Shown in pieces: positions 11,725 through 64,000 of a DNA stretch of 64,000 bases (within the stretch, counting starts at the first letter, position 1; every line of letters starts with the position of its first letter). The DNA comes from Heteronotia binoei (taxonomy: Eukaryota). The stretch is taken from the NCBI RefSeq assembly GCF_032191835.1, contig NC_083231.1:126356001-126420000 (forward strand), read 5' to 3'. Position numbers and translations under genes: made by a program. Under the pieces are notes generated by a model. It saw nothing but the letters and a program-made list of their open reading frames with translations. It had not been told where the DNA came from and made no database searches.

Positions 11725-12950
11725 TGCCGCTCGGGGTGGGCGGCGGAGGCGGCGGGTGTGCCCCTGGGCTGGAGGAGTTCGGGAGGCGGCCTTCCTCCTC
11801 CCTCCCCCTGCTGCTCTGTCTTTCGACCCGCTCGGACCGGGCTCCTTCGTGCCCGCCTTCTCCAGTCCAGGCAGCTCTGGAGTCCTTGCGGTAAAGGGCA
11901 GCGGACCAGCTGGCAGGTTCGCTGGTGGCGGCTGCCCTTGGGCTCGCACCGGATTCGCCCCCCAAGTATCCCAGCGGGCCGCTCCATGGGCCCCCCTTCT
12001 GATCGGTGCTCCCAGCCCCTTTCCGCGAAGAAGAAGGAGCCCTTCGGGGCCTCTGCCTGCTTCCCCTTGGGGACGCTTGGCTCCAAGGGGGGGGGGGGGC
12101 GCCAGCACACCAGGGGGTCTCGGCCGGGGCGCGAGGCAAGAGCTGGCGCCAGTGAAGAGGCCTGGCTGGCACGGCAGCCCCCGGAGGGGGAGGGGGGCCT
12201 CCCGGCAGACCTTTGCCCTACAGCTGCCCCCCCCCCCCGCAGGACCAGTCCTGGCTTCTCCCTCCCCCTGCGCCCCTTGCCAGGCCGGGACCTGCCGGCG
12301 GTGCGGGGAGCGGGGCTCCTAGGGGCTGCGGCGGCGAGGAAGCGGAGGAGGAGACAGGATGGGCGGGCAGGGCGCGCTGGGCGGAGTGGTGCGGAGAGGC
12401 GGGAGCCGGCTTTGGGCCGCGGGCGCGGCGGCCGAGAGGAAGGGGGGCGGGGGCGGCGGGGGCGGGCAGCGAGCGCTTCATGCGGTTACGACGTGTCTGA
12501 TTGAGGCAAGAGGCGCCAGCCGCTCCCCGGGGAGCGCAGGGGACCCTGAGCAGGGCCGCCCTAATGCAATCTGCGGCCTCCCAAATCCGATTAGCCCGGA
12601 ATTAACCCGGCAGAGAGAGAGGGCGAACCAGGAGAGCGCTGGCCAGAGAAGCGGCCTGTCCCGCGCTGGGCCTGCGGGCGGGGGCGACGAGATGGCCCCG
12701 GGGCGGGGAGGCTGCTGGCGCTCGGCACCTGGCCCTGGGCACCACCCAGCCCAGCCAGAGCCTTCCTGGGCGGGGGGGGGGGGGACTCCGGTGGCTGGCC
12801 CGGCCAGCTTGGCAGCAGAGGAGAGAGCGGGGGGGGGGGCTCCGAGCTCCCGCGGGGTTTTCAGCCCCCGGACAGACAGACAGACAGACAGAGGGCCGCT
12901 TTCTGCCCGGAGGTCATCGCCGGCCTCAGTGTCCCTGTCTGCAAAAGGCA
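11725..12950. promoter_or_regulatory. CpG island with clustered homeodomain cores (candidate distal enhancer or promoter)
   Basis: CpG-dense. TGATTGA at 12498 and three TAAT/ATTA cores within ~45 bp (12562-12604) in GC-rich DNA. No coding homology recognised. Confidence 0.4.
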
Positions 12951-13059
12951 GCCCGGGGAGGGCTGGCAATGGAGGGGCGTCTCCCCCCTTCCCCCAGTGC
13001 TCTGCTCCGAAGTCCGGCTGTGCTGACCGGGCTCTGCCCCCAAGCCGGCCGGGCGCAAC

Positions 13060-13430
13060 CCAAAGCGGTGATCTGATCACCATCTCCAAGTCCTTGAAGG
13101 GCTGTCATAGAGACGGGGGGGCTAAATTGTTGTTTGTGGCCCCGGAAGGCAGGACCAGAACCAGTGGGTTGAAATTAAATCAAAAGAGTTTCCGGCTCAA
13201 CATTAGGAAGAACTTCCTGACCATTAGAGCGGTTCCTCAGTGGAACAGGCTTCCTCCTCGGGAGGTGGTGGGCTCTCCTTCCTTGGAGGTTTTTCAACAG
13301 AGGCTGGATGGCCACCTGACAGCGATGAGGATCCTGTGAATTTAGGGGGAGGCGTTTGTGAGTTTCCTGCCTTGTGCAGGGGGGTTGGACTAGGTGACCC
13401 TGGAGGCCCCCTTCCAACTCTCTGGTTCTC
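13060..13430 (+). mobile_element. CR1 LINE 3' end
   Basis: FRLNIRKNFLTIRAVPQWNRLPPREVVGSPSLEVFQQRLDGHL, then tail ggggttggactag.tgaccctggagg.cccttccaactct. Confidence 0.9.
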
Positions 13431-14444
13431 TCCCCCCAGGCGCCCGAGCTCTTCCCAGGCCAAGAAAGCCTTGCGGTGCCAGTCCTGGTGGGGTCGCTGG
13501 CTGAGGGGACGCCCCTCCCCCTCTTCGACCTGCGCTGCTGCCCTGCCCGGAGAGTTTCTTCTCCCCCCCCCCCCCCGCGCCACCAAAGAGGCTGCCGGCG
13601 GGTTGTTGAGAGAAACGGGGGCCCCGCGCGCGTGGGGGGCTGGGGGGCAGGCGCCTGCCTTCACGGTCTCTGTTTGTGTCGCCGGGGGGAGGATAATGAA
13701 AACAAAACCTGGGCTGGGGGTGCGCAGGCGAGTCAGATCTGGGGAGCTCGGCAGGGTGGGCTCTGGTTAGCGCTGGAACAGGACGGAGACCCGCGAAGAA
13801 AACCCGCCTCTATTCTCCTGAGACGGAGCAGCCTCCCCACCCCTTGCTTCGAAAAACTGCGCGGGGGGGCCACAAACCGGCTGCGATTGGCCGCGGTTCC
13901 GCACCACGAATTAAAACCAAAGCGGCCGCTGCCCCCGCTGCCCGCAGGGTGTTTTGCACTAGGGGGGACTGAAGAGCTCTCCCAGGTGGGCGTCCTGAGC
14001 CGGCAGGGAGCTAATTCCTGAGGCCCTTCACCCAGACGGTCCCTGGCTGGGGGGCCCAGAGCGCCAAGCACCCCCCCCCCCACGGTGAAGGGCGGCGAGG
14101 GGTTTCCACGCCCCCCCCATCCGCAGTTGGCCCGGTCGGAATCCTGTAGCTGGGCGGAGGGGGGTGGGGGCGGGCAGGGGCCTCCAGCCCTCCCCCTGGC
14201 AGAGGGGATGTCGTTAGCAGCGAGAGAAGCAGCGAGAGGCGCCTGGGTGCCGCTTCCCAGGGGAGGAGAAGACTCAGCGCCAGGACCCGGCAAGGGCGAA
14301 GTGGGCGGAGTTTCAGACAACGAGTATTCTTTGAAGTTTCTAGATCACTCTTGGTTCCTTTCTTGTATCAGAAACATATTCTAAATGAAATAATTTTTTA
14401 TTAGAAAAAAAACTGCAGTTTGAAGCACTGGACTCGGAGAAGAT

Positions 14445-15170
14445 TTAGGTTTTATTAAATTTTATACCCCGCCCTCCCCGCCGAGGCAGGCTCAGGGCGG
14501 CTTGCAGCAATCATCATGAAACTTAATAAAATCACTTTAAAGCAGCTGGTGCTGGTTCTGATGTTATTCAAGTTCGGTGACTCAATATTCCCTGGATTCC
14601 CCCGGCTGTTACAAGTCTCAAAGCCAGCCGGAAGCCAGCCGGAAGAGTGTGGTCTGACAGGGCTTGCGGAACTGGGCGAGGTCTAACCTCCTCCGGCAGC
14701 TGGAGGAGGGGGCTGCTACTGAAAAGGCCCGATCCCTGGAAGCTGTCAGCCTCGCCTCTCTCTGGGGATCACTAAAAGATGTTGCGTTCCCGATCTGAGT
14801 ACCCTCCGGGGGACGTGTGGAGACAGACGGTCCTTGGCCATAAAGGGCTTTGAAGGTAACGCCCAGCGCCTTGTAGCAAATGCTGTATACTATTGGCAGC
14901 CAGTTCTTGCAGCCGGCTGTTCGTGCTCCTGCATGGGCAGCCGCCGCCTTCTGCACTAGCTGTAGTTTCCGGTTGGTGACAAAAGGCAAGCCCCATGTAG
15001 AGGGCATTACAGTAGTCCAGTCTTGAGGTGACCCCTTGCATGGATTACAGTTGCCAGGTCGTCACGGTCGAGGAAAGGAGCCAACTGTTTCCCCAGCCTA
15101 AGGTGGGGAAAGGCGGATTTCGCAGTTGCTGCTATCTGGGGCCTCTATTGTCAGCGAGAGCCCCCGAAGC
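14445..15170 (-). mobile_element. L2 LINE 3' fragment, degraded
   Basis: VTSRLDYCNALYMGL, RKLQLVQKAAA and DRAFSVAAP on the minus strand; reversed L2 tail at 14445-14510. Confidence 0.8.
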
Positions 15171-16329
15171 ACCCCCAATCTTCTGACCTTCTGATTGTTC
15201 CCTGCTTGCGGTTGCCCCCTGGAAGAAGCTGGGCATTGTTCTCATTAGTCTTGATTGCTTTAATGTATCGGAAACATATTCTAAATAAAATTTTATTTTT
15301 ATTTAAAAAAAACCCAAGGAAGTCCTGAGGAGCTTCCTGGGCAGCCCCCTTCTGTCAGTCGGGGGGGGGGGGGGGGGAGGGCTTCTTCTGGCACCTAAAG
15401 CGGGGGGGCCGGGGGGGCCTCGCGTAAAACGTGGTTGGTCTCCCGGGTGCCTGGCTGGACTCAGACTCTCTTCTGCGGCTTCACACCTGGATCTCTCCCC
15501 GTCCTTCCTCTTGCTTCTTCGTTTGCTGTGAAGACCGTGGAGCTGAGAGAACAAAGAAAGAGGGGGACTCCCCCCCCCCCCTCAGAAAAGAGACGCGCCC
15601 CCCTGCAGGTGGCAGACCACAGCGCCCTGTCCCCCGCCAAATGGATGAGCCGCTAGCAGCTCCCAGCCTGCTCTCTGGAGAAAGCCGCCCGCCTCACCCC
15701 TCCCGCGGAACTCGCGAAGCAACAAGCCCCCCCCCCCCCCGCCTGGCCCCCTGCCACTTTGTTGGCGATACCAGGGGACCTCTGCCCCGAGGGCCTGGCA
15801 GCTGGGGGAGGGTCTCCCGGAAGGGGGCTTCTGGGCCGCTGCCATGTTGGATTTATTTGCTGGTCAGTCGGGACACGATGCGTTTGTTGTTTGTATCCCG
15901 TTGGCAATTGCCTGGAGTTAAACCCGGGGAATCCCAGCTGCGAGCAGATTGACCTGTAGCCTCCCGGCTGGTTACTCAGCACCTTGTCACAGTGTGGAAG
16001 AAAGAAGGCCGCGATCTGAGGGTCCGGCCGCTGCGCGCTCTCGCTCTGAGGAGAAGGAAGGCCGGACGTCCTCAGCAAGGCGTCAGACATTTGTGCTGCT
16101 TTGATTCTTTCATCCCAAGGACCTTTCCCCGAATGCTTCCCAGTAACGATGAACTTCTCTTTTGAAAGCGTGTGTGATCCTCGGCTCCAGACATCGGTCT
16201 GCACCATCACCTCTGGATTTTAAAGCGACAGCACCCCCCCCCCCCCCCCCCCCCGCAATGCAATCCAGGCAGAAGGAGCAAATGCAAAGCCAGTCCTGAG
16301 AAGACCTAGCCTGAAGGCCCCTTCCTCTC

Positions 16330-16576
16330 TCTCACAGAATCATAGAAGAGTTGGAAGGGACCTCCAGGGTCATCTAGTCCAACCCCCTGCACAAGGCAGG
16401 AAACTCACAAACCCCTCCCTCTAAAATCACAGGATCTTCATCGCTGTCAGATGGCCATCTAGCCTCTGTTTCAAAGCCTCCAAGGAAGCAGAGCCCATCA
16501 CCTCCCGAGGAGGAAGCCTGTTAGAATCATAGAAGAGTTGGAAGGGACCACCAGGGTCATCTAGTCCAACCCCCTG
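16330..16576 (-). mobile_element. CR1 3'-end fragments
   Basis: agagttggaagggacctccagggtcatctagtccaacccc is the reverse complement of the CR1 tail; duplicated. Confidence 0.8.
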
Positions 16577-17457
16577 CCTCTCGGCTTGGCTTCGCGAACG
16601 AAGATTTAAGAAGGGTGCAATAGTCCACGTCTGCTGCAGGCACGCTGGTGGCTGACAAGACCAATGCGGGACAGGCAGGTCCGGCCACAGTGGCTGCAGG
16701 GAAAAGTCTGATTTAGGGTTGGTGCTGTAGCAGCGCGATTCTTCCTAAACGTTCCAAGATTTGCCACAGGCCTTTCCTGCTAACGGTATCGAAAGCTTTG
16801 GTTCAGGGTGCTGCCGAAAAATGCTTTCGTCTCCGGGTTAGCATCAGGCGACCAATACCCTGAACCGCCTACATGCAGGATCGGGACTGCGGCTTCCAGT
16901 GGCACCTTCCACCTGCCGTTTCGCCCCTTGTCCATCGCTGCAGGACTTGATGCGTTGTGGGTTGTGTATGTGGATATGCCCTTCAGGCCTGCGCAGAGGA
17001 ATTTTTTAGGTGAAGCCCAGTGTGCGCGGTACTGGCTCCACCCTTTCACCTGGGGGTCATCTGCCATGGCCCAGTAAGCCGGGACGCCGGCAGCGAGTCC
17101 TCCAGGTGGTAGGTGTTACATTAACGAGCTCTATCTGCCCGGGTTTGATGTTAGAGTTTTCCTTCTCTTAGGCTGGCAAGGTTGGTGGGCCCAGCCTGCC
17201 CATCCGGTTATACCGCCGGACAATTCGGTCGCACCATGACGTAGCAAACTCTGTGAAAAACGGGGGGGACCAGCGAGAAGGTGTTGCTACGGATGCAGTA
17301 ATGCAGGAGAGGCCATTGCAGTGACCATCTGCCAGGCATAGCCAGACAGTGACCACGCGGCATTCACTACACCGGGAGAGGAGAGGCTATGTATTGCGCA
17401 TACACTTTCCCTGGGGGGGTAGGATACCCAGAGGGAGCCCACTCCCCCACCCCCACC
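16577..17457 (-). mobile_element. Internally deleted RTE-clade retroposon (5'UTR + ~55 nt RT + C-terminal Zn-finger/3' end)
   Basis: 11-bp TSD CCAACCCCCTG (16566-16576 / 17458-17468). KAFDTVSRKGLWQILERLG is fused directly to the FPCSHCGRTCLSRIGLVSHQRAC-type end. RTE-like 5' motif agaaggaaaactct. Confidence 0.72.
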
Positions 17458-17459
17458 CC

Positions 17460-18430
17460 AACCCCCTGCACAAGGCAGGAAACTCACAAACACCTCCCCC
17501 TAAAGACAGGATCTTCATTGCTGTCAGATGGCCAACCCCCTGCACAAGGCAGGAAACTCACAAACACCTCCCCCTAAAGACAGGATCTTCATTGCTGTCA
17601 GATGGCCATCTAGCCTCTGTTGAAAAACTTCCAATGAAGGAGAGCCCACCACCTCCCAAGGAGGAAGCCTGTTCCACTGAGGAACCGCTCTAAACTCACA
17701 AACCCCTCCCCCTAAATTCACAGGATCTTCATTGCTGTCAGATGGCCATCTAGCCTCTGTTGAAAAACCTCCAAGGAAGGAGAGCCCACCACCTCCCAAG
17801 GAGGAAGCCTGTTCCACTGAGGAACCGCTCTAACGGTCAGGAAGTTCTTCCTAATGTTGAGTCGGAAACTCTTTTGATTTAATTTAAACCCATTGGTTCA
17901 GGTCCTACCTTCTGGGGCCACAGAAAACAATTCCACACCATCCTCTATAGGACAGCCCTTCAAGGACTTGAAGATGGTGATCCTATCACCTCTCAGCCGC
18001 CTCCTCTCCAGGCTAAACATGCCCAGCTCCTTCAACCTTTCCTCGTAGGACTTGGTCTCCGGACCCCTCCCCATCTTCGTTGCCCTCCTCTGGACCCGTT
18101 CTAGCTTGTCTAGATCCTTCTTAAAATGTGGTGCCCAAAACTGAACACAAGACTCCAGCTGAGGCCTTACCAAAGCAGAGTAAAGCGATACCATCACATC
18201 ACGTGCTCTGGACACTCTACTTCTGTCAATACAGCCCAGAATTGCATTTGCCTTTTTAGCCACCGTATCACACTGTTGACTCATGTTCAGCGTATGATCC
18301 ACTAAGACCCCTAGATCCTTTTCGCACATACTACTGCTAAGACAAGTCTCCCCCATCCTATAACCAAGCATTGGATTTTTCCTACCTAAATGCAGAACTT
18401 TACATTTATCCCTGTTAAAATTCATTTTAT
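17460..18430 (-). mobile_element. CR1 LINE 3' portion with duplicated 3' segments
   Basis: ORF 17898-18425 (FNRDKCKVLHLG, EKDLGVLVD, KANAILGCI, LERVQRRATK, RRLRGD) followed by repeated 3'UTR pieces. Confidence 0.92.
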
Positions 18431-50792: not shown

Positions 50793-53700
50793 GATGCTGT
50801 TGTTCAGTCGCACAGTTGAGTCTGACTCTTTGCGACCCCCTGGACAAAGTCACGCCAGGCCCTCCTGTCTTCCACCATCCTCCGAAGTCTGCTCAAATTC
50901 ATGTTTGTTACATCAGTAACACTGTCCAGCCATCTCAACTTCTGCTGTCCCCTTCTTCTTTTGCCTTCTGTCTTTCCTGACATCAGGATCTTCTCCAGGA
51001 AGTGCTCCGTTCTCATTTGGTGGCCAGAGTATTTGAGCTTCAGCTTCAGTATCTGACCTTCCAGGGAACAGTCTGGGTTGATTTCCCTTAGGCCTGACTG
51101 ATTGGATCTTCTCGCAGTCCAAGGGACTCTCAAGAGTCTTCTCCAGCACCACAGCTCAAAAGCATCTATTCTTCTGCGCTCAGCCTTCCTTATGGTCCAG
51201 CTCTCACAGCCATACATTACTCTTGGGAATACCATTGCTTTGACTATACGGACTTTTGTTGGCAGGGTGATGTCTCTACTTTGTATTCTACTGCCCAGGT
51301 TCGCGATAGCTGTCCTCCCAAGGAGCAAACATTTTTTAATGTCATGGCTACAGTCACCATCTGCAGTGATCTTGGATCCCAGAAATGTGAAGTCTGTCAC
51401 TACTTCCATGTCTTCCCCTTCTATTTGCCAAGGTGCGATGGGGCCGGATACCATGATCTTAGTTTTTTTTATGTTGAATTTCAAGCCTACTTTTGTGCTC
51501 TCCTCTTTCACCCTCAACAAGAGGTTCTTTAGGTCTTCCTCACTTTCTGCCATTAGTGTCATCTGCATAACTGAGGTTGTTAATGTATTTCCTGGCAATC
51601 TTAATTCTGGCTTCTGCTTCATCCAGGACAGCATTCCGCATGATGTACTCTGCACATAAATTAAATAAGCAGGGTGACAATATACATCCTTGTCGAACTC
51701 CTTTTCCTATTCTAAACCAATCAGTTGTTCTATATCCCATTCTGACAGCTGATTCTTGACCCTTATACAGGTTTCTCAGGAGACATGTGAGGTGGTCTGG
51801 TACTAGGGTGACCATAATGTCTGAAGGCCAGCCAGGGACACCTTGGGGGGGGGGGGAAGGTAGGAGTGTGCGCGCGCCGCCAGAAACAGGAAGTGACGTC
51901 ACTTCCGGTGACGGCACTTCCGGTGATGTCATGCCACCGCCGGAAACAGGAAGTGACGCCACTTCCTGTGACATCATTTCCCCCACGTCACCTGCCGGAA
52001 ACGGGAAGTGACATCACTTCGTGTGGCATCACTTCCCCCAAATGACATCATTTCCCCCAAATGCCACTGCCGGAAACAGGAAGTGACTTCACAGCACTTC
52101 CTGTGACGTCCCCAAAAATCCCCCAAATATCACCGCCGGAAACAATTTTGTTCTCAAATCCTGTATATACTTCATCAGTATATGGGATAAGGCACTTTCT
52201 CAACTGTGCTGCATAATGCAGCCTATTTATTTTGTCCTGTTTGCTCTGTTGGCTCTATCTGCGCCACCTTCATCACTTTCGGGGTGTGGATCCCCCAGTG
52301 GGGTGGTCTCCCGACTCCCTCCGCCGGCTATTTCTGATAGCCCTGCGCCCCCTCTTTCATTTGATATGTGTCCCGTGCGGGTGCCACCCTCCCGCCAGGA
52401 GATGCCGCAAAATGAGCCCCCTTGAGGCTTATGGCGGCAGGGCTCGGGGGAAGCGAGCTAGACTGCTGTTCTTTTGAGGGGTTATAGAGTGTTTCGAGCC
52501 CGTCCCTGTGGCATCGGTCCCATCGTTGTGGGACCCAGGGGGCCAGCGCAGTGGCACGCCGAAGCAGCCTGTCACTAATAACACAGGTCGAGATGCAGGA
52601 CAGGAACCCAGAAGTGACCGACAGGCTGCTTCAGCGTGCCGCTGCGCCGGCCCCCTGGGCCCCACAACGATGGGACCGATGCCACAGGGACGGGCTCGAA
52701 ACACTCTATAACCCCTCAAAAGAACAGCAGTCTAGCTCGCTTCCCCCGAGCCCTGCCGCCATAAGCCTCAAGGGGGCTCATTTTGCGGCATCTCCCGGCG
52801 GGAGGGTGGCACCCGCACGGGACACATATCAAATGAAAGAGGGGGCGCAGGGCTATCAGAAACAGCCGGCGGAGGGAGTCGCGAGACCACCCCACTGGGG
52901 GATCCACACCCCGAAAGTGATGAAGGTGGCGCAGATAGAGCCAACAGAGCAAACAGGACAAAATAAATAGGCTGCATTATGCAGCACAGTTGAGAACGTG
53001 CCTTATCCCATATACTGATGAAGTAAATACAGGATCTGAGAACAAAATTGCACCAGAAGACACAAACACAAAGCTCCCTTACACTGAATCAGTTCTTGGG
53101 TCCACCAAAGTCAGTATTGTCTAGTCCAGTCACAAACACAAAGCTCCCTTACACTGAATCAGTGCTTGGGTCCACCAAAGTCAGTATTGTCTANNNNNNN
53201 NNNNNNNNNNNNNNNNNNNNNNNNNNNNNNNNNNNNNNNNNNNNNNNNNNNNNNNNNNNNNNNNNNNNNNNNNNNNNNNNNNNNNNNNNNNNNNNNNNNN
53301 NNNNNNNNNNNNNNNNNNNNNNNNNNNNNNNNNNNNNNNNNNNNNNNNNNNNNNNNNNNNNNNNNNNNNNNNNNNNNNNNNNNNNNNNNNNNNNNNNNNN
53401 NNNNNNNNNNNNNNNNNNNNNNNNNNNNNNNNNNNNNNNNNNNNNNNNNNNNNNNNNNNNNNNNNNNNNNNNNNNNNNNNNNNNNNNNNNNNNNNNNNNN
53501 NNNNNNNNNNNNNNNNNNNNNNNNNNNNNNNNNNNNNNNNNNNNNNNNNNNNNNNNNNNNNNNNNNNNNNNNNNNNNNNNNNNNNNNNNNNNNNNNNNNN
53601 NNNNNNNNNNNNNNNNNNNNNNNNNNNNNNNNNNNNNNNNNNNNNNNNNNNNNNNNNNNNNNNNNNNNNNNNNNNNNNNNNNNNNNNNNNNNNNNNNNNN

Positions 53701-55075
53701 NNNNNNNNNNNNNNNCCGCCAGCAGCCCCCCCCTCTCTGCTTACTTACCTTGTTCCAGGGCGGGTGGCGGCCTCTCCTCCGGCCTGCTGGTGCTGCTGGC
53801 GGGGCTGGCAGCGGCTGCGGAGGCCGGGGAGAGGCCTTCGCTGGTCGGCGCTGGTCGCCGGAGGCCCTCCAGAGTCTCTGGAGGGCCTCCCGGGACCAGC
53901 GCCGGCGCCTCCGCGGCCTCCGCTGGTCGCCGGAGGCCCTCCAGAGTCTCTGGAGGGCCTCCCGGGACCAGCGCCGGCGCCTCCGCGGCCTCCGCTGGTC
54001 GCCGGAGGCCCTCCAGAGTCTCTGGAGGGCCTCCCGGGACCAGCGCCGGTGCCTCCGCGGCCTCCGCTGGTCTCTGGAGGGCCTCCAGCGACCAGCGGAG
54101 GCCGCGGAGAGGCCTCCGCCACCGCCACCGGGCCCCGGGCGGGGAAGGCGGTGAGTGAGGGAGCGTCCCTGCGCACACGCAGGGACGCTCCCTCCCTCAC
54201 TTGCCGCCTTCCCCGCCCGCGCGCGGGGCCCACCGCCTCCGGGGCTGGCTAAACCGGGACCTCTAATGGTCCCGGTATAGCCAGCCCGGGAGGCGGGAAT
54301 AGGGGGCCAGAACCGGGAGGCGGGAATAGGGGGCCAGAACCGGGACGGTCTGGCCACCCTATCTGGTACTCCCATCTCTTTAAGGACTTGCCACAGTTTG
54401 TTGTGATCCACACAATCAAAGGCTTTAGCATAGTCAGTGAAGCAGAAATAGATGTTTTTCTGATACTCCTGTGCTTTCTCCATAATCCAGCGGATGGTGG
54501 CAGTTTGATCTCTAGTTCCTCTACCTCTCCGAAACCCAGCTTGAACTTCTGGTAGTTCCCAATCCACATACTGCTGAAGCCTAGCTTGTAGGATCTTTAA
54601 CATGACCTTGCTGGCATGTGAAATGAGTGCAATGGTGCGGTAGTTTGAACATTCCTTGGCATTACCCTTCTTTGGAATTGGAATATAAACTGATCTTTTC
54701 CAATCCTGTGGCCACTGTTGTGTTTTCCAAATTTGTTGACATAATGTGTGCATCACTTTAACAGCATCATCTTTTAGGACTTTGAATAGCTCAACTGGGA
54801 TACCGTCATCCTTGTAGAATTCTTCTGTGTATTCTTGCCACCTCTTTCTGATCTCTTCTGCTTCCGTTAGGTCCCTACCATTTTTGTCCTTTATCATGGC
54901 CACCTTAGCACGAAACGTTCCCTTGATTTCTCCCATTTTCTTTGAGATCTCTTGTCCTTCCCATTCTATTATTTTCCTCTATTTCTTTGCATTGTTCCTT
55001 CAGGAAGGCCTCCCTCTTTCCTTGCTGTTCTCTGGAAATCTGCATTCAGTTGGGTGAATCTTTCCTTTTCATCTT
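50793..55075 (-). mobile_element. RTE-BovB LINE (3' ~1.7 kb), split by a hAT insertion at 51804-54361
   Basis: YADDT, KVGLKFNIKKTKIM, VMYGCESWTI, IDAFELWCWRRLL and RAWRDFVQGVAKSQTQL motifs. Upstream half: WKRSVYIPIPKKG, YRTIALISHASK, QAGFRRGRGTRD, DYAKAFD. Confidence 0.95.
51804..54361. mobile_element. Non-autonomous hAT fold-back element, copy 2
   Basis: TIRs TAGGGTGACCA...TGGCCACCCTA, perfect 8-bp TSD TCTGGTAC (51796-51803 / 54362-54369). Contains a ~900-bp hairpin (52143-53050), 72-bp palindromic tandem units (53850-54090) and an N gap at 53194-53715. Confidence 0.92.
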
Positions 55076-56836: not shown

Positions 56837-56842
56837 TTTATT
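56837..56842 (-). terminator. AUP1 polyadenylation signal
   Basis: Minus-strand AATAAA ~210 nt after the stop (57053). Confidence 0.6.
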
Positions 56843-57052
56843 TTGATAGCGAAAGCCTCCCCCCCCCCCGGCTCCAGGGCCCCCCAGTGCTGTGCTGAGT
56901 CCAGGGCCCGGAGCGAAAGCGCAGGTGGGCTGGGATCAGCCCGGGACACACGGAGTTGGAGTAGCCACAGGTTGCTCATCGTCCACGGCAGCCCTCCACG
57001 CCCATAGCCGCCACTGCCCGTTGCCAAGTCCAGAAGAAGTTGCATGATCTGC

Positions 57053-60000
57053 TCAGCGGTTCCCCTGGCTCTGGGGCATCCCGTATTTCTCTGTGTATTT
57101 CCTGCGGAGGCAAGGGAAGCCTGAGGCAGTGCCCAGCAGAGCCAGCCAGCCAGTCTGCCCTGCCCAAGCACCACAAGCCCTCCTTGCCCCCTCCAGCCTC
57201 ACCTCCTGGCGTAGTCAAAGAGCGCCCGCTTCCGGTCCTGCAGGGAGAGGTGCCTGGCCTCCGGGGACCTGGCAAACACCTTCAGGGGCAGCTGCAACCA
57301 CAGAGAGAGAGAGAGAGAGAGAGAGGAGAAGAGGGAGGGAGTCACCCCCTTGCCCTAGTGCATGCTTGCTTTCTCCTCCTCCCCCCACCCGAAGGCGGTC
57401 TGCACGTACCGCAGCTGGAGGAGGAGCCGCAGGGGGCTGAGCACTGGAGACGGATGGGCCAAGCAAGGAGGGCTCCTCTTCTGCCTCGCTGGGGGTGAAG
57501 GGAACCCGCCCCTCCAGCAGGTTGGCAATGGTGGCGTCCACGCAGTTTGTCTGGGCTGGGGAGAGAGGCAGGCCATATGTGAGAGGCAGGGCGAAGGGGA
57601 AAAACCAACAACCCTGGGCCAGACTTCCTCCAAGCGTGGTGGCTCTTGGATCTGGAGTATCAAATTGATTCCTCTTCCAGATCACCTCCAACGGACTTTA
57701 AACATCCCCCGCCGCCAGCCTCCTCCTGGGTTTAAATTAACACTGAATTAATGGACTATATTGATCCTTTATCCTCATTATGTGGTTTTATTATGGGATG
57801 CTGCTTATACAAGTTTTTCCGGAGAGCAGTGGGGTTTAAGTCTTCTCCAAAAACTAACACTGAAATTCAGCGACACCGCACCAATACAAGCAATGCTTAT
57901 TCTGACACAAACTTTGGCGAGACAGTGGTCATGTAACCAGGCATTGGAAAGGTAGACTGAGGGACCCTCCTGCACACCTGATCAAGTGAGGCCTGACTCA
58001 GGAGAACTCCAGTGGACCAAGTCCTGCATTTAAGGTGGCTCCCGCCTAGTTCTGCTGCAAAAGACTAACGCAGTCACCTATGTGGAAATCAGCTGGTTTA
58101 TGCCGCCTTCCAACTCACTCTGTCTTGCCTTACTGACGCTTTCCTTGCTCTGCAATGCCCAGGAGGGAACCTTGAGCTCCACCTTTCAGTCACCAATCTG
58201 CAGCAGCCCCCCTCCCACACCCTCCCAGCATCCACTCACTCACCCAAGTCTTTGCGAATGACTGCCAGGGGCACGTGAGGCAGAACTTCCTTGACACGCT
58301 GAGCCATGCCTGTCAAGTGGGGTGTATCCTCCGTGGGGGGTGAGCTGGAGGAAGCCTGAGGCCGGGCTGCCAAGGGCTGACTTGGGACTGGGAAAGAGAG
58401 AGATGGGTGAAACACAAGTGTTTGCTGAAGGTCCCACCTCCAGGGCAATTCTGGGGCGCAGCCACCTTCCTCCCTTTCTGGGACCGCTTGCCACAGGCAG
58501 AGTGAAGTTGTCACTAACATCCTCTCCTGGGGAAAAATCCACCCCCCCCCCCACTTCTACAAGCCAGAGCACAGATGGGGCTAGCAAGGCCAGGCCCGTG
58601 GGATGACCATGTTGATGGGCGCAGTGGGAAGAATGGCTCAGTTGAGGGCTGGAGGACCGTGGCCCACCTGGGGCATAGGGAGTTGGAGGGCCGTAGCTCA
58701 CCTGGGGCATAGGGGGCTGGAGGGCCATGGCTCACCTGGGGCATAGGGGGCTGGAGGGCCATGGCTCACCTGTGGCATAGGGGGCTGGAGGGCCGTGGCT
58801 CACCTGGGGCATAGGGAGCTGGAGGGCCGTGGCTCACCTGGCGCGTAGAGGGCTGGAGGGCTGTGGCTCACCTGGGGCATAGGGAGCTGGAGGGCCGTGG
58901 CTCACCCCACCTGGGGCATAGGGGGCTGGAGGGCTGCGGCTCACCTGGGGGATAGGAGGCTGGAGGGCTGCGGCTCACCTGGGGGATAGGAGGCTGGAGG
59001 GGCCGTGGCTGACCTGGGGCATAGGAGGCTGGAGGGCTGTGGTTCACCTGCAGCATATGGGGCTGGAGCGCTGTGGCTCACCTGGGGCATATGGGGCTGG
59101 AGGGCTGTGGCTCACCTGGGCATAGGGGGCTGGAGGGCTGTGGCTCACCTAGAGCATAGGGGGCTGGAGGGCTGTGGCTCACCTGGGGCATAGGGGGCTG
59201 CTGTGGCTCACCTGGGGCATAGGAGGCTGGAAGGCTGTGGTTCACCTGCGGCATATGGGGCTGGAGGGCTGTGGCTCTCCTGGGGCATAGGGGGCCGGAG
59301 GGCTGTGGCTCACCTGGGGCATAGGGGGCTGGAGGGCCGTGGCTCACCTGGGGCATAGGGGGCTGGAGGGCTGTGGCTCACCTGGGGCATAGGGGGCTGT
59401 GGCTCACCTAGGGCATAGGGGGCTGGAGGGCCGTGGCTCACGTGGGGCATAGGGGGCTGCTGTGGCTCACCTGGGGCATAGGAGGCTGGAGGGCTGTGGT
59501 TCACCTGCGGCATATGGGGCTGGAGGGCTGTGGCTCTCCTGGGGTCTGGAAGGCTGTGGCTCACCTGGGGCATAGGGGTCTGGAAGGCTGTGGCTCACCT
59601 GGGGCATAGGGGGCTGGAGGGCTGTGGCTCACCTAGGGCATAGAGGGCTGGAGGGCCATGGCTCACCTGGGGCATAGAGGGCTGCTGTGGCTAACCTGGG
59701 GCATAGGAGGCTGGAGGGCTGTGGTTCACCTGCGGCATATGGGGCTGGAGGGCTGTGGCTCTCCTGGGGCATATGGAGCCGTAGGGCTGTGGCTCACCTG
59801 GGGCATAGGGGGCTGTTGTGGCTCACCTGGGGCATAGGGGTCTGGAGGGCTGTGGCTCACTTAGGGCATAGGGGGCTGGAGGGCCGTGGCTCACCTGGGG
59901 CATAGGGGTCTGGAAGGCTGTGGCTCACCTAGGGCATAGGGGGCTGGCGGGCCATGGCTCACCTGGGGCATAGGGGGCTGGAGGGCCGTGGATCACCTGG

Positions 60001-62994
60001 GGCATAGGGGGCTGGAGGGCTGTGGGTCTCCTGGGGCATATGGGGCCGGAGGGTCGTGGCTCACCTGGGGCATAGGGGTCTGGAGGGCTGTGGCTCACCT
60101 GGGGCATAGGGAGCTGGAGGGCTGTGGCTCACCTCACCTGGGGCATAGGGGGCTGGAGGGCTGCGGCTCACCTGGGGGATAGGAGGCTGGAGGGCCGTGG
60201 CTCACCTGGGGCATAGGGGGCTGGAGGGCTGTGGCTCACCTGGGCATAGGGGGCTGGAGGGCTGCGGCTCACCTGGGGGATAGGAGGCTGGAGGGCCGTG
60301 GCTCACCTGGGGCATAGGGGGCTGGCGGGCCGTGGCTCACCTCACCTGGGGCATAGGGGGTTGGAGGGCCGTGGCTCACCTGGGGCATAGGGGGCTGGAG
60401 GGCTGCGGCTCACCTGGGGGATAGGAGGCTGGAGGGCCGTGGCTCACCTGGGGCATAGGGGGCTGGCGGGCCGTGGCTCACCTCACCTGGGGCATAGGGG
60501 GTTGGAGGGCCGTGGCTCACCTGGGGCATAGGGGGCTGGAGGGCTGCGGCTCACCTGGGGGATAGGAGGCTGGAGGGCCGTGGCTCACCTGGGGCATAGG
60601 GGGTTGGAGGGCCGTGGCTCACCTGGGGCATAGGGGGCTGGAGGGCCGTGGCTCACCTGGGGCATAGGGGGCTGGAGGGCCGTGGCTCACCTGGGGCATA
60701 GGGGGTTGGAGGGCTGTGGCGCAGTCGCTTCAGGTGCTCTGCTTTGTCAGCAGCAGTGAGCCGTGTTGACACCACATCAAGCTCCAAGGCCAGGAGCTGC
60801 AAGAGGCACAGAGATCAATGGGGAGGCTCCCTGTCCAGAGGAGCCCCCCCTGTCAACATCCCTGACACCAACCGTGGGGGGGCCCCAGCCGGTAGGATGC
60901 TGTGGAATACGAGGGCAGCGAACACCATAGTCCCATGGCTGCCATGGGGAAACCCCACCCTGGGCTTCAGTCCTTACCTCTTGGACTCGAAGAGCCAGCT
61001 CCTCCCGCGTCTCTTCAGCTCGCCTGCAGACGGAAGGGAGCCACCTGCACCAGGCCAAGAAAAAAGCCCAAATGAAGACGGGGCAACAAGCTGGCTCTCC
61101 TTCTCCCTACTGGCATAAAGGGGCCCTTCTTTTAAAGGACAACAGAGCTGCCTCCAAACACTCCTCCTCCCACCCCCAAAGAATGACAGAGAACTAGTAC
61201 CTTACTTGATAAATGGTGAAGGGAACAAAGAAAGTCCAGAGCAGCTCAGTAACCCAGGAGGCATCCGCTGTGCTCTTCAAAGAGAAAGGGAAAGGAAACT
61301 ATAAAAAGCCCCGGGAACCTGTGGCCGGCACACAACCCTGTTGGGATAAGGGTGGAGCAGCGCCCCCCCCCCCAAGACTCATTGTGGCAGAACACTTTGC
61401 AAAAAAAGGAAAGACCCGAATATGCGCAACGCAGGACAGGAGTGAAAGTACAACGCTAGCCCCTCTCCCTCCCCCCTAAAGCACTCACCACGGCAACAAA
61501 GGGCCTCTGCACTTGCAGGGCCACTGGCTGGACCACATCCAAGATGGAGAACGGCCACGTGCTGGAAAGGGAACAGCCCGGTCAGCAAGGCCAGGCCTGG
61601 AGAGAGGCAAGCCTATGGGCAGCACCCGCCCCTCCTGCTCGCTGCTCCCCCAGCCCACCTGAAGCGCAGAAGCCCCACCCTCCCGTTGGTGGTGGTCTCC
61701 TCAGGGAAGAGCAGCAGAGGCGGGTTGCCTCCGTGGAGGAGTAGGCCTTCAAGGACTCCAGGAGCTCTGCTCGGCTGCCCGTGCTCCCCACCTCCAGGAA
61801 GCCACGGGACCAGCAAATGAACCCAGAGGCTCCGTTCAGCATCGGCTGTTGGAGAAGAGAGAGAGACACAGAAGGCAAGAATGTAAAGCCTGAGAAACAC
61901 CACCCACCCATCCTCCAGGTATCCAGAGGCCAATGAGGGAAGACAGCTCTTGGGTGCCCGGAAGCAGCCCCAAGATAACTGATGGTTCAGCTGCTACCAA
62001 AAAGTCTCACCCCATCCTCCAAGATGGGGTTGGGCAGGTAAATTGCTGGAAACTTCCTAAAGGTAGCACCACAAAATGCTCAGGTGGCATCCTTCAAGCC
62101 TGGAATGAATTTTTGAGAGGACGGTGGCTTAGTGGTAGAGCATTTGCTCAGAAAGCAGAAGGTCCCTGGTTCAATCTCCAGCATCTCCAACTAAAGAAGT
62201 CCAGGCATGGAGGCGTGAAAAACCTCAGCTTGGGACCCTGAGAGACAGTCTGAGTAGACAAGACTGACTTTGATGGACCGAAGAGGGTCTGATTCAGTAG
62301 AAGGCGGCTTCATGTGTAGAGGGAGGGATAATGGCTCAGTCGTAGAGCATCTGCTTGGTAAGGTTCAATCCTGGCATCTGCAACTAAAAAAGGGTCCAGG
62401 CAAATAGGCATGGAAAAACCTCAGCTGGAGACCCTGGAGAGCGGCTGCCAGTGAGTTGACAAGACTGACCGGGGGGGGGGGGGGTCTGATGCAGTAGAAG
62501 GCAGCTTCCTATGAGACCAGGCGTGGCTAGGCGACCCTCATGCAGGGCCCACTCACCGCATTGCAAGAGGTCAGCAAGTTGACGACGTTGTGGTCGAAGT
62601 GCGTGACGTGGTTGGCGATGTAGACGCGGGCGCGGAGGCCGTGCTGCCGAGGCTGGCTCTGCCGCACCAGGAGGCCGAGCACGGAGCACATCACCCGCAC
62701 GACAAACCTGCGGAGGGCGCAGTCCGGAGGGCGCAGCTGACGAGGAAGACGTGCAGGCCGAGGAAGAGGCGCAGCAGCAGCAGGCACAGCCCCACCGGCG
62801 CGTAGAGCAGCAGCGACAGCAGCAGCAGCCCCGTCGCTCGGCAGCCTGCAGGGGGGAGAGGGCGGGCGCGCGCTTAGAGCGGGGGGGGGGGGAGGCGGCG
62901 CGCGCCCGCGGGGGAGGGAGGGGGGCTCACCGGTGGGAGTCGAAGAGGCGGTCCGGCCGGGGGCGCGGGGGCGGGCGTGCGGGGAGGCCTCCAT
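57053..62994 (-). CDS. AUP1: Lipid-droplet/ERAD factor AUP1 (~429 aa after repairing four 1-bp indels; exons 62994-62931, 62845-62557, 61845-61659, 61561-61489, 61274-61201, 61044-60978, 60796-60691, 58387-58244, 57555-57410, 57291-57203, 57101-57053)
   Basis: RLFDSHR, hydrophobic LLLYAPVGLCLLLLRLFLG, acyltransferase-like ANHVTHFDH, LLLFPEE.TTNGR.GLLRF, CUE domain MAQRVKEVLPHVPL...CVDATIANLLEG, and G2BR ARHLSLQDRKRALFDYARR. Splice sites are GT-AG and phases chain after repair. Confidence 0.9.
58643..60720 (-). repeat. 34-bp minisatellite (~60 copies) derived from the AUP1 exon 3' end + splice donor
   Basis: Minus-strand unit GTGAGCCAC(A/G)GCCCTCCAGCCCCCTATGCCCCAG. The first copy overlaps the coding end (...CCC TAT GCC CCA G|GTGAGC at 60691/60690). 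Confidence 0.93.
62115..62515 (+). mobile_element. Two tandem tRNA-headed SINEs with CR1-type 3' tails
   Basis: Heads gtggcttagtggtagagca...ggttcaatctcc and ggctcagtcgtagagca...ggttcaatcc; tails ggtctgattcagtagaaggc(g/a)gcttc. Confidence 0.7.
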
Positions 62995-63234
62995 GGCGTC
63001 CGGCCGCTCCCTCCCTCCCTCCGTCTCCCGCCTTCCCGGCCTCAGGGCCAGGCGGAGGCCCGCTCAGCCCCTGCCGCCATCTTGGCCGCGCCTGCGCAGA
63101 CGAGGGAGCGCCGTTTCCGGGCCGCCCGGAGAAAGGGCGGGGCCTCCTTCCTCCGCGGCACGGGCTCCTCTTCCCGGCAGGCCTTGCGCGGCGGCCGGCA
63201 CTTCCGGCCCCCAGGCGAGGAGGAGGAGCGGGCG
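62995..63234. promoter_or_regulatory. AUP1/HTRA2 bidirectional CpG promoter (240 bp between the putative ATGs)
   Basis: YY1-type GCCGCCATCTT at 63073-63083, GC box at ~63135, ETS CACTTCCGG at 63199-63207; head-to-head gene arrangement. Confidence 0.7.
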
Positions 63235-63461
63235 ATGCGGCGCGGTGGGCGCTGCGGGCGGGGGTGGCGGCGGGGCGGGGCTGGGGCTGGGGGCGGGGCT
63301 GGGCGGGCGCGGGGGGGGCGGCGGCGGCCGTGCTGGTGGGCGGGGACGGGGAGGGGCGCCCCGTGGGGATCACGCCCCTCCCCGCGAGGCACCTTCAACT
63401 TCATCGCCGACGTGGCCGAGAAGACCGCCCCCGCCCTCGTCTACGTGGAGATCCTGGGCAG
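63235..63461 (+). CDS. HTRA2: Serine protease HTRA2/Omi, exon 1 (gene continues beyond the window; start codon uncertain)
   Basis: SPRGTFNFIADVAEKTAPALVYVEILGR followed by AG|GTGAG (phase 2); head-to-head with AUP1. The N-terminal part is GC-rich and may contain indel errors. Confidence 0.8.
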
Positions 63462-64000
63462 GTGAGGGAGGGGGAGGAGAGGAGAGGGGCCCCCAAGCAG
63501 AGCCCCCAGCGCCCCCTCCCCCGTCTCCATGGAGATCCTGAGCGGGGGGGGGAGTGGGAGGAGAGGCCCCCCCAAGCAGAGCCCCCAGCGCCCCCTCCCC
63601 CGTCTCCATGGAGATCCTGAGCGGGGGGGGAGGGGGAGGAGAGGGGCCCCCCAGGACCCCCTCCCCTTGTCTCTATGGAGAGCCTGAGCGGGGGGGGGGA
63701 GGGGGAGGAGAGGGGGCCCCCCAGCGCCCCCTCCCCCCGTCTCCATGGAGATCCTGAGCAGGGGGGGAGGGGGAGGAGAGCCCCCCCAAGCAGAGCCCCC
63801 AGCGCCCCCTCCCCCGTCTCCATGGAGATCCTGAGCAGGGGGGGAGGGGGAGGAGAGGCCCCCCCAAGCAGAGCCCCCAGCGCCCCCTCCCCCGTCTCCA
63901 TGGAGATCCTGAGCGGGGGGGGAGGGGGAGGAGAGGGGCCCCCCAGGACCCCCTCCCCTTGTCTCTATGGAGAGCCTGAGCGGGGGGGGAGGGGGGAGGA
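63462..64000 (+). repeat. 67-79-bp minisatellite (at least 7 copies) derived from the HTRA2 exon 1/intron 1 junction
   Basis: Unit ...gccccctcccccgtctccatggagatcctgagc(a/g)gggggggagggggaggag aligns to the exon end gcccccgccctcgtctacgtggagatcctgggcag|gtgagggagggggaggag. Confidence 0.85.

Follow-up and report, generated by a model that had tools for sequence, protein, structure and literature searches.

What happens in splicing when an intron begins with dozens of copies of its own 5' splice site? The question is raised by a stretch of 64,000 nucleotides from the gecko Heteronotia binoei (contig NC_083231.1, positions 126,356,001 to 126,420,000; hereafter the window, in whose coordinates all positions are given), in which the intron between exons 7 and 8 of AUP1, read on the minus strand, opens with a minisatellite whose unit reproduces the end of the exon together with the donor that follows it. 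Our results suggest that this is a lineage-specific minisatellite spanning the exon–intron boundary, whose first donor is joined to an unchanged acceptor in the dominant mRNA, a reading to which we give a probability of roughly 0.8. The features on which the argument turns are the following:

60691 to 60796, minus strand: AUP1 exon 7, 106 nt, with a phase-1 end, encoding ...TRLTAADKAEHLKRLRHSPPTPYAPG (RNA reads and contigs that join 60796 to 60978 and 60691 to 58387).
60685 to 60693, minus strand: authentic 5' splice site CAG/GTGAGC, cut at 60691/60690 (sole donor seen used in RNA).
58646 to 60720, minus strand: 34-bp minisatellite of about 61 units (Tandem Repeats Finder, unit reading, probe and donor scan).
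60653 to 60655, minus strand: in-frame TGA, from the G/GTGAgc at donor 2 (open reading frame 60653-60802 and frame scan).
58388 to 58645, minus strand: 3' remainder of the intron, about 258 nt of unique sequence; it has a branch-like TTCAC, a tract of pyrimidines and, as acceptor, cccag/T (sequence and RNA junction).
58244 to 58387, minus strand: AUP1 exon 8, encoding the linker and the N-terminal half of the CUE domain (MAQRVKEVLPHVPLAVIRKDL) (Pfam, PDB 2EKF and RNA junctions).

Tandem Repeats Finder gave the array a period of 34, 61.5 copies, 85% matches and a score of 2848, and the unit, read one by one, is GTGAGC followed by CACGGCCCTCCAGCCCCCTATGCCCCAG. The tail of exon 7, CACAGCCCTCCAACCCCCTATGCCCCAG, is likewise followed by GTGAGC, and is identical to units 1 and 2 at 26 of 28 letters and to several inner units at 27 of 28. 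Because the exon tail plus GTGAGC matches the array unit, the first monomer spans the exon–intron boundary; it comprises the last 28–30 nt of the exon, the repeat likeness extending 30 nt into exon 7 (repeat start at 60720, exon end at 60691). A 20-nt probe laid over the unit junction found 51 matches with up to two mismatches, against 0 expected, all of them in the array and on the minus strand. The sequence-only reading had described the unit as exon tail plus GTGAGC in about 60 tandem copies, most of them recreating CAG/GTGAGC, and both statements held, the exact donor 9-mer CAGGTGAGC being present at 39 sites with the authentic donor counted in. Its mention of about 60 near-identical donors was slightly generous: 60 GT sites of the intron match the consensus MAG/GTRAGT at 7 or more of the 9 positions, 42 match at 8 of 9, and 39 are exact. 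The decoys in the array thus comprise 38 exact copies of the 9-mer and about 21 degenerate ones. The units differ by about 15%, and some of them have small insertions or deletions (lengths of 26, 29, 33 and 39 bp occur, as does a duplicated GTGAG). Multi-unit blocks are repeated along the array (units 4–7, 8–11 and 12–16, and also 27–29, 34–36 and 42–44), and the best local self-matches lie at shifts of 141, 225 and 242 bp. To judge from its letters, an array with such block duplications and unit divergence is an evolving minisatellite, unlike assembler stutter.

Exon 7 ends ...gcc cca g/gtgagc and the acceptor reads ...ctttcccag/tc at 58388/58387, so that donor 1 joined to this acceptor completes the codon G/TC and continues the CUE frame. 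As had been claimed before, and as the frame scan bore out, use of donor 2 puts 34 nt more into the exon, with a frameshift, whereas all later donors include the TGA at 60655-60653; donors 1 and 2 alone precede this stop, which donor 3 and those beyond it take into the exon. An AAG/T acceptor 7 nt further on (58381/58380) would return donor 2 to frame, and the RNA reads at the locus gave it no support. In the donor-2 frame, exons 8 and 9 are open and translation would end within exon 10, at a stop about 13 nt short of the last junction (57202/57101). Under the 50–55-nt rule for nonsense-mediated decay, an mRNA with its stop at such a position should escape; since the donor-2 isoform would then be decay-resistant, its absence from RNA is informative.

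The use of the donors was followed in four runs from three studies, all carrying the same species label, which were placed on 57150-63100. X7 and X8 are raw-read RNA runs, of each of which about 6% was read, X1 is an RNA contig set, and X3 is a contig set of unspecified library type that holds spliced contigs only and was treated as RNA-like. Junctions were listed from a threshold of 3 reads and a 1% share; eight less-supported ones lie beyond those listed. Among the listed junctions, the sole one between exon 7 and exon 8 leads from 60691 to 58387, skips 2,303 nt and is GT..AG on the gene strand. It was found in 14 reads with 13 starts in X7 and in 9 reads with 8 starts in X8 (23 reads in total), as well as in one X1 contig and one X3 contig, and the shorter side of the junction reads measures up to 48–50 nt, reaching past the 30-nt repeated tail into unique exon sequence. 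An X1 contig of 1,624 nt, with a depth of 101.8, spans exons 10, 9, 8, 7, 5, 3 and 2. No listed junction uses another donor of the array, donors 2 and 3 included, and none lies within the array.

Coverage agrees with the junctions. The depth was zero over 60135-60532 (units 6 onward) in X7, X8, X1 and X3, and from the depths of the bins we estimate about 23 for exon 7 in X7 and about 36 in X8, and less than about 3% for transcripts retaining units 6 onward at steady state. In the bin that holds the exon end and units 1–5, a depth ratio of 0.63 to the next bin was expected, and the ratios observed were 0.74 (X7) and 0.54 (X8); the depth of this bin is what its exon part alone predicts. A few X8 reads fall inside the array at a likeness of at least 95% (bins 58941-60134, depth 0.05–0.75). 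They are taken to be pre-mRNA, with X8 intron reads estimated at about 1–2% of exon depth, and they show the repeat to be present in another individual. AUP1 is expressed, then, its intron is removed efficiently, and the use of donor 1 is exclusive or at least dominant. In X7 and X8, moreover, about 2% of the exon letters are not those of the assembly, e.g., at six fixed differences in 62602-62760, while X1 and X3 match it in the exons; the differences suggest that these two runs stem from a divergent lineage given the same species label and using the same AUP1 junctions.

The same reads bear on the quality of the assembly. Searches by tblastn with turtle and bird fragments revealed that the frame changes within well-conserved exons, near 62727 and near 61734. 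One G was added behind 61734 in 5 of 5 X7 reads, in 12 of 13 X8 reads and in the X1 contig, and one G behind 62725 in 13 of 15 X7 reads, in 7 of 7 X8 reads and in contigs of both X1 and X3, while one C behind 62973 was added in one X3 contig. Each added base restores the frame, the one at 62973 joining the ATG at 62994 to the conserved ...LFDSHR. The AUP1 frameshifts are single-base assembly errors at three G/C homopolymers and the gene is intact; that it might be a pseudogene was also considered, and is ruled out by reads that restore the frame. Given these base-level errors, single-base details of the array, such as its 33-bp units, should therefore not be over-read. For annotators the locus holds two hazards: the three missing bases disrupt the frame and would break an automated AUP1 annotation made from the assembly alone, and gene predictors may choose a decoy donor. 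Elsewhere in the window, a GC-rich 72-bp tandem repeat (53849-54088; 3.3 copies, 97% matches) adjoins a run of N, i.e., an assembly gap, and a reverse-transcriptase-like open reading frame (53200-53700).

That the minisatellite is specific to a lineage is suggested by the orthologous introns of relatives. One relative's contig (L007) has the donor junction ...GCTTTGCCCCAG/GTAGGT at the orthologous exon, then about 318 nt of intron up to the acceptor junction ...tcttgcag/CCTCGAGCCAGCC of the next exon, with position and phase as in the gecko AUP1; Tandem Repeats Finder found no tandem repeat in this whole contig. The orthologous intron on two further contigs (L009 and L011) is similar, about 340 nt long and without a repeat. 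The unique part of the gecko intron gave no alignment with the introns of the relatives except at the acceptor, and word searches with the open reading frame of the CUE exon and with one internal to the array gave no match. The AUP1 residues of the relatives resemble most the bird fragment, and no contig had a human appearance. Outside the repeat, the gecko intron measures about 258 nt, so that the ancestral intron was probably of about this length. A 34-bp segment made up of the exon 7 tail and the first intron bases would then have been duplicated, the likely cause being slippage between two short repeats spaced by 34 bp, GCCA(C) in the exon tail and GCCA where the intron starts; the array may later have been amplified by unequal exchange, with multi-unit blocks duplicated as well, so that an ancestral intron of about 270–320 nt would have grown to 2,303 nt. 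The last unit of the array degenerates into TGAGCCATTCTTCC, which probably is the old intron start.

Several points weigh against a lineage-specific, boundary-spanning minisatellite with a dominant first donor. The 23 junction reads from about 6% of the raw runs leave room for donor-2 use of up to about 10–15%, and isoforms from donor 3 onward would be lost to nonsense-mediated decay. In addition, the assembly has base-level indel errors at the AUP1 locus, the length of the array is that given by the assembly, and the relatives that lack the array are too distant from the gecko to date it within squamates.

The sequence-only reading had also proposed that the array is a variable number of tandem repeats (VNTR) that tunes AUP1 dosage. 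If this were so, decoy transcripts would be decayed, or the array would slow splicing, and array length would set AUP1 output. We regard this as improbable, even if 38 decoys are identical to the authentic 9-mer and the premature stop brought in by donor 3 and later ones, far upstream of later junctions, would make their products invisible at steady state; in human, tandem-repeat length is often associated with splicing (PMC10078293). The donor-2 product is the one expected to be stable, and this decay-resistant isoform was not seen, no decoy junction is among those listed, units 6 onward are without coverage, and X8 intron reads reach just about 1–2% of exon depth, while the identical pseudo-sites of F7 do not compete at all (PMC1557585). 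The proposal thus found no support, and the donor-by-donor check of RNA junctions that was advised along with it returned one of the two outcomes named in advance as speaking against it, namely the first donor alone joined to exon 8.

It is very unlikely that the array is an artefact of assembly, collapsed, inflated or mis-joined, with a true intron that is much shorter. The single-base homopolymer errors lie in AUP1 itself, the N gap is about 5 kb away, and X3, guessed to be DNA, has spliced contigs only, all of which lend this explanation some weight; however, unit divergence of about 15% with nested block duplications is unlike typical assembler stutter, and the few X8 RNA reads inside the array match it at 95% likeness or more.

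Stepwise (recursive) removal of the intron is hardly credible. The units would serve as ratchet points, (Y)nCAG/GTGAGC, each step regenerating a donor and leaving no trace in the mRNA. Recursive splice sites of this kind in long Drosophila and vertebrate introns consist of an adjoining acceptor and donor (YnCAG/GTRAG), and 45 YAG/GTRAG motifs occur in the AUP1 intron, where any donor–acceptor event inside the array would merely shorten it and be invisible in the final mRNA. The resemblance is one of letters only, since the array has 0 yTnAy branch-site motifs and no U-rich tract (3.3 T on average in the 20 nt before each AG, the tracts being C-rich and U-poor); no intermediates were seen, with no intra-array junction among those listed. 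Finally, a coding repeat, i.e., a proline-rich stretch (PPAPYAPGEP...) in the AUP1 linker, is next to impossible, for although the units translate as proline-rich and array open reading frames reach up to 92 amino acids, a period of 34 bp is not divisible by 3, stop codons turn up repeatedly in all frames, and the junction reads, in which the mRNA skips all 2,303 nt, refute it.

If, as we favor, the array is a minisatellite across the boundary whose first donor dominates, donor 1 would owe its advantage to exon definition across the 106-nt exon and to the 5'-to-3' order of recognition, and perhaps to being the only donor preceded by the purine-rich stretch of the exon (GACAAAGCAGAGCACCTGAAGCGAC); 38 identical decoys would be bypassed in the manner of human F7 intron 7. 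An explanation by RNA structure, in which the decoys would be masked, was tried and ruled out, since the 9-mer is predicted to be unpaired with the same low probability in donor 1 as in the decoys. Most likely, the array is neutral or slightly deleterious baggage.

The host gene had been named as AUP1 before any search was made, and the matches uphold the name. The CUE half in exon 8 matches, with E=2.9e-6, PDB 2EKF, a solved structure of the CUE domain from human 'Ancient ubiquitous protein 1', and the HVTHFD exon is 70–80% identical to proteins named AUP1 at their source from two turtles and one bird. The CUE domain is split over exons 8 and 9 (Pfam profile positions 3–24 and 26–42) and, for that reason, scored below the Pfam cut-off; it alone scored, Pfam giving no match on the open reading frames of the upstream exons. 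A CUE domain placed after an acyltransferase-like region (HxxxxD motif) and an N-terminal hydrophobic segment is the arrangement by which we recognize the host gene as AUP1. Its remaining exons are:

62994 to 62930, 62845 to 62557, 61845 to 61659, 61561 to 61489, 61274 to 61199 and 61042 to 60978, minus strand: AUP1 exons 1 to 6 (tblastn frames and RNA junctions; borders of exons 1 and 2 taken from sequence).
57410 to 57555, minus strand: AUP1 exon 9, C-terminal half of the CUE domain (Pfam and contig pieces).
57202 to 57291, minus strand: AUP1 exon 10, holding the stop of the donor-2 frame (contig pieces and sequence).
56840 to 57101, minus strand: last AUP1 exon, stop TGA at about 57056-57054, AATAAA near 56842 (sequence).

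The last exon is supported by a loose-end consensus at 57202 (X7, X1 and X3) that matches 57101 onward. Two further observations concern the upstream part of the gene. The relatives (L009:500-1090, L006 and L007) have an intron between ...LPDSVLR(R) and FIVRV, with the borders CGACG/gtgcgt ... cccag/GTTTATT on L009, at a site where gecko 62557-62845 and the transcript contig are continuous, a precise intron loss. Within an intron of the gene, a repeat resembling a short interspersed nuclear element (62125-62522), with tRNA-like letters, belongs to a very abundant transcribed repeat family, X1 contigs reaching a depth of 12,000–18,000 there with many 'goes back' junctions.

The composition of the array deserves a word of its own. 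Its template had been called prone to form G-quadruplexes (G4), which proved true in a moderate degree only: the G-rich template strand has a mean G4Hunter score of 1.06, 11% of its 25-nt windows reach at least 1.5, canonical G3+N1-7 motifs number 7 in 2,075 nt, and four-tract motifs become common only when a single loop of 13 nt is permitted. On these predictions the strand would be moderately G4-prone at best. On the plus strand, the unit begins GGGCTGGAGG, which agrees at 10 of 11 letters with AGGGCTGGAGG, the primer of the classic 33.6 minisatellite core (listed in PMC10079795, table 2). Exact occurrences of this word number 27 within the array, as against 2 in the remaining 62 kb of the window, and the tail of exon 7 differs from it by one mismatch.

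AUP1 lies head-to-head with an HTRA2-like gene, whose exon 1 is in the window and whose relatives' contigs give trypsin matches in Pfam. This HTRA2 exon 1 (63440-64000, plus strand) ends CCTGGGCAG/GTGAGG; next comes a 78-bp array in which the tail of this exon is copied (GTCTCCATGGAGATCCTGAGCGGGG...). Both arrays copy an exon tail, but the later HTRA2 copies lack a GT donor, unlike those of AUP1. It is doubtful whether exon-end/5'-splice-site junctions are preferred birthplaces of minisatellites in this gecko and not chance victims. If they were, a possible link would be the 33.6-like core, with donor-near sequence of short GC-rich introns favoring slippage or unequal exchange; the AUP1 array would then be an extreme case, in which selection only keeps the first donor dominant.

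Minisatellites that start at an exon end and reiterate its donor have been described, and the AUP1 array is a large addition to a class already known from F7, IFI6, CBS, LMNB2 and PDGF; by itself, it reveals no new mechanism. It shares with this class a first monomer that spans the boundary (array start at 60720, 30 nt inside exon 7), an exact donor repeated in the following monomers (39 copies of CAGGTGAGC; 60 sites at 7/9 or better), and a most upstream donor that is alone in mRNA among the junctions listed from four runs and three studies. A literature search pairing AUP1 with VNTR found no paper. To our knowledge, AUP1 is the largest example of one donor followed by dozens of identical near-consensus donors.

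Within the class, the behavior of the pseudo-sites varies. In LMNB2 (100-bp monomer) and PDGF intron 4 (81-bp monomer), the authentic donor alone is used (PMC1557585); these are boundary-type arrays as in AUP1, though with longer monomers and fewer copies (10–18). In IFI6 (6-16) intron 2, with 25 pseudo-sites, the first two are used constitutively besides the authentic donor, and two pseudo-sites are also used in the VNTR of CBS intron 13, which has 15–20 repeats (PMC1557585). Both resemble AUP1 as donor-reiterating minisatellites that start at the exon end, but in AUP1 the use of donors 2 and 3 was not detected and would break the frame.

A close likeness is that to human F7 intron 7 (Borensztajn et al. 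2006, PMC1557585), where the first monomer of a 37-bp VNTR lies across the boundary. There, too, the authentic donor is followed by identical pseudo-donors and the most upstream one alone is used; the 4–8 identical pseudo-sites are functional, and yet unused unless those upstream of them are destroyed (PMC1557585). F7 has 5–9 copies, a weak donor (UGG/gugggu) and 4 bp of exon in the monomer, whereas AUP1 has about 61 copies, a near-consensus donor (8/9) and 28–30 nt of exon in the monomer; and F7 has been studied by polymorphism and mutational tests, while AUP1 is known from one assembly and RNA. With its dozens of identical donors behind the authentic one, the locus is, as the sequence-only reading had foreseen, a natural test of 5' splice-site choice, and its array lends itself to minigene assays in which exon definition would be set against rules of proximity. 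AUP1 thus offers a non-mammalian amniote that follows the rule of human F7, by which the most upstream donor wins, and does so in a harder case, with donors at 8/9 of the consensus and decoys up to 2 kb nearer the acceptor.

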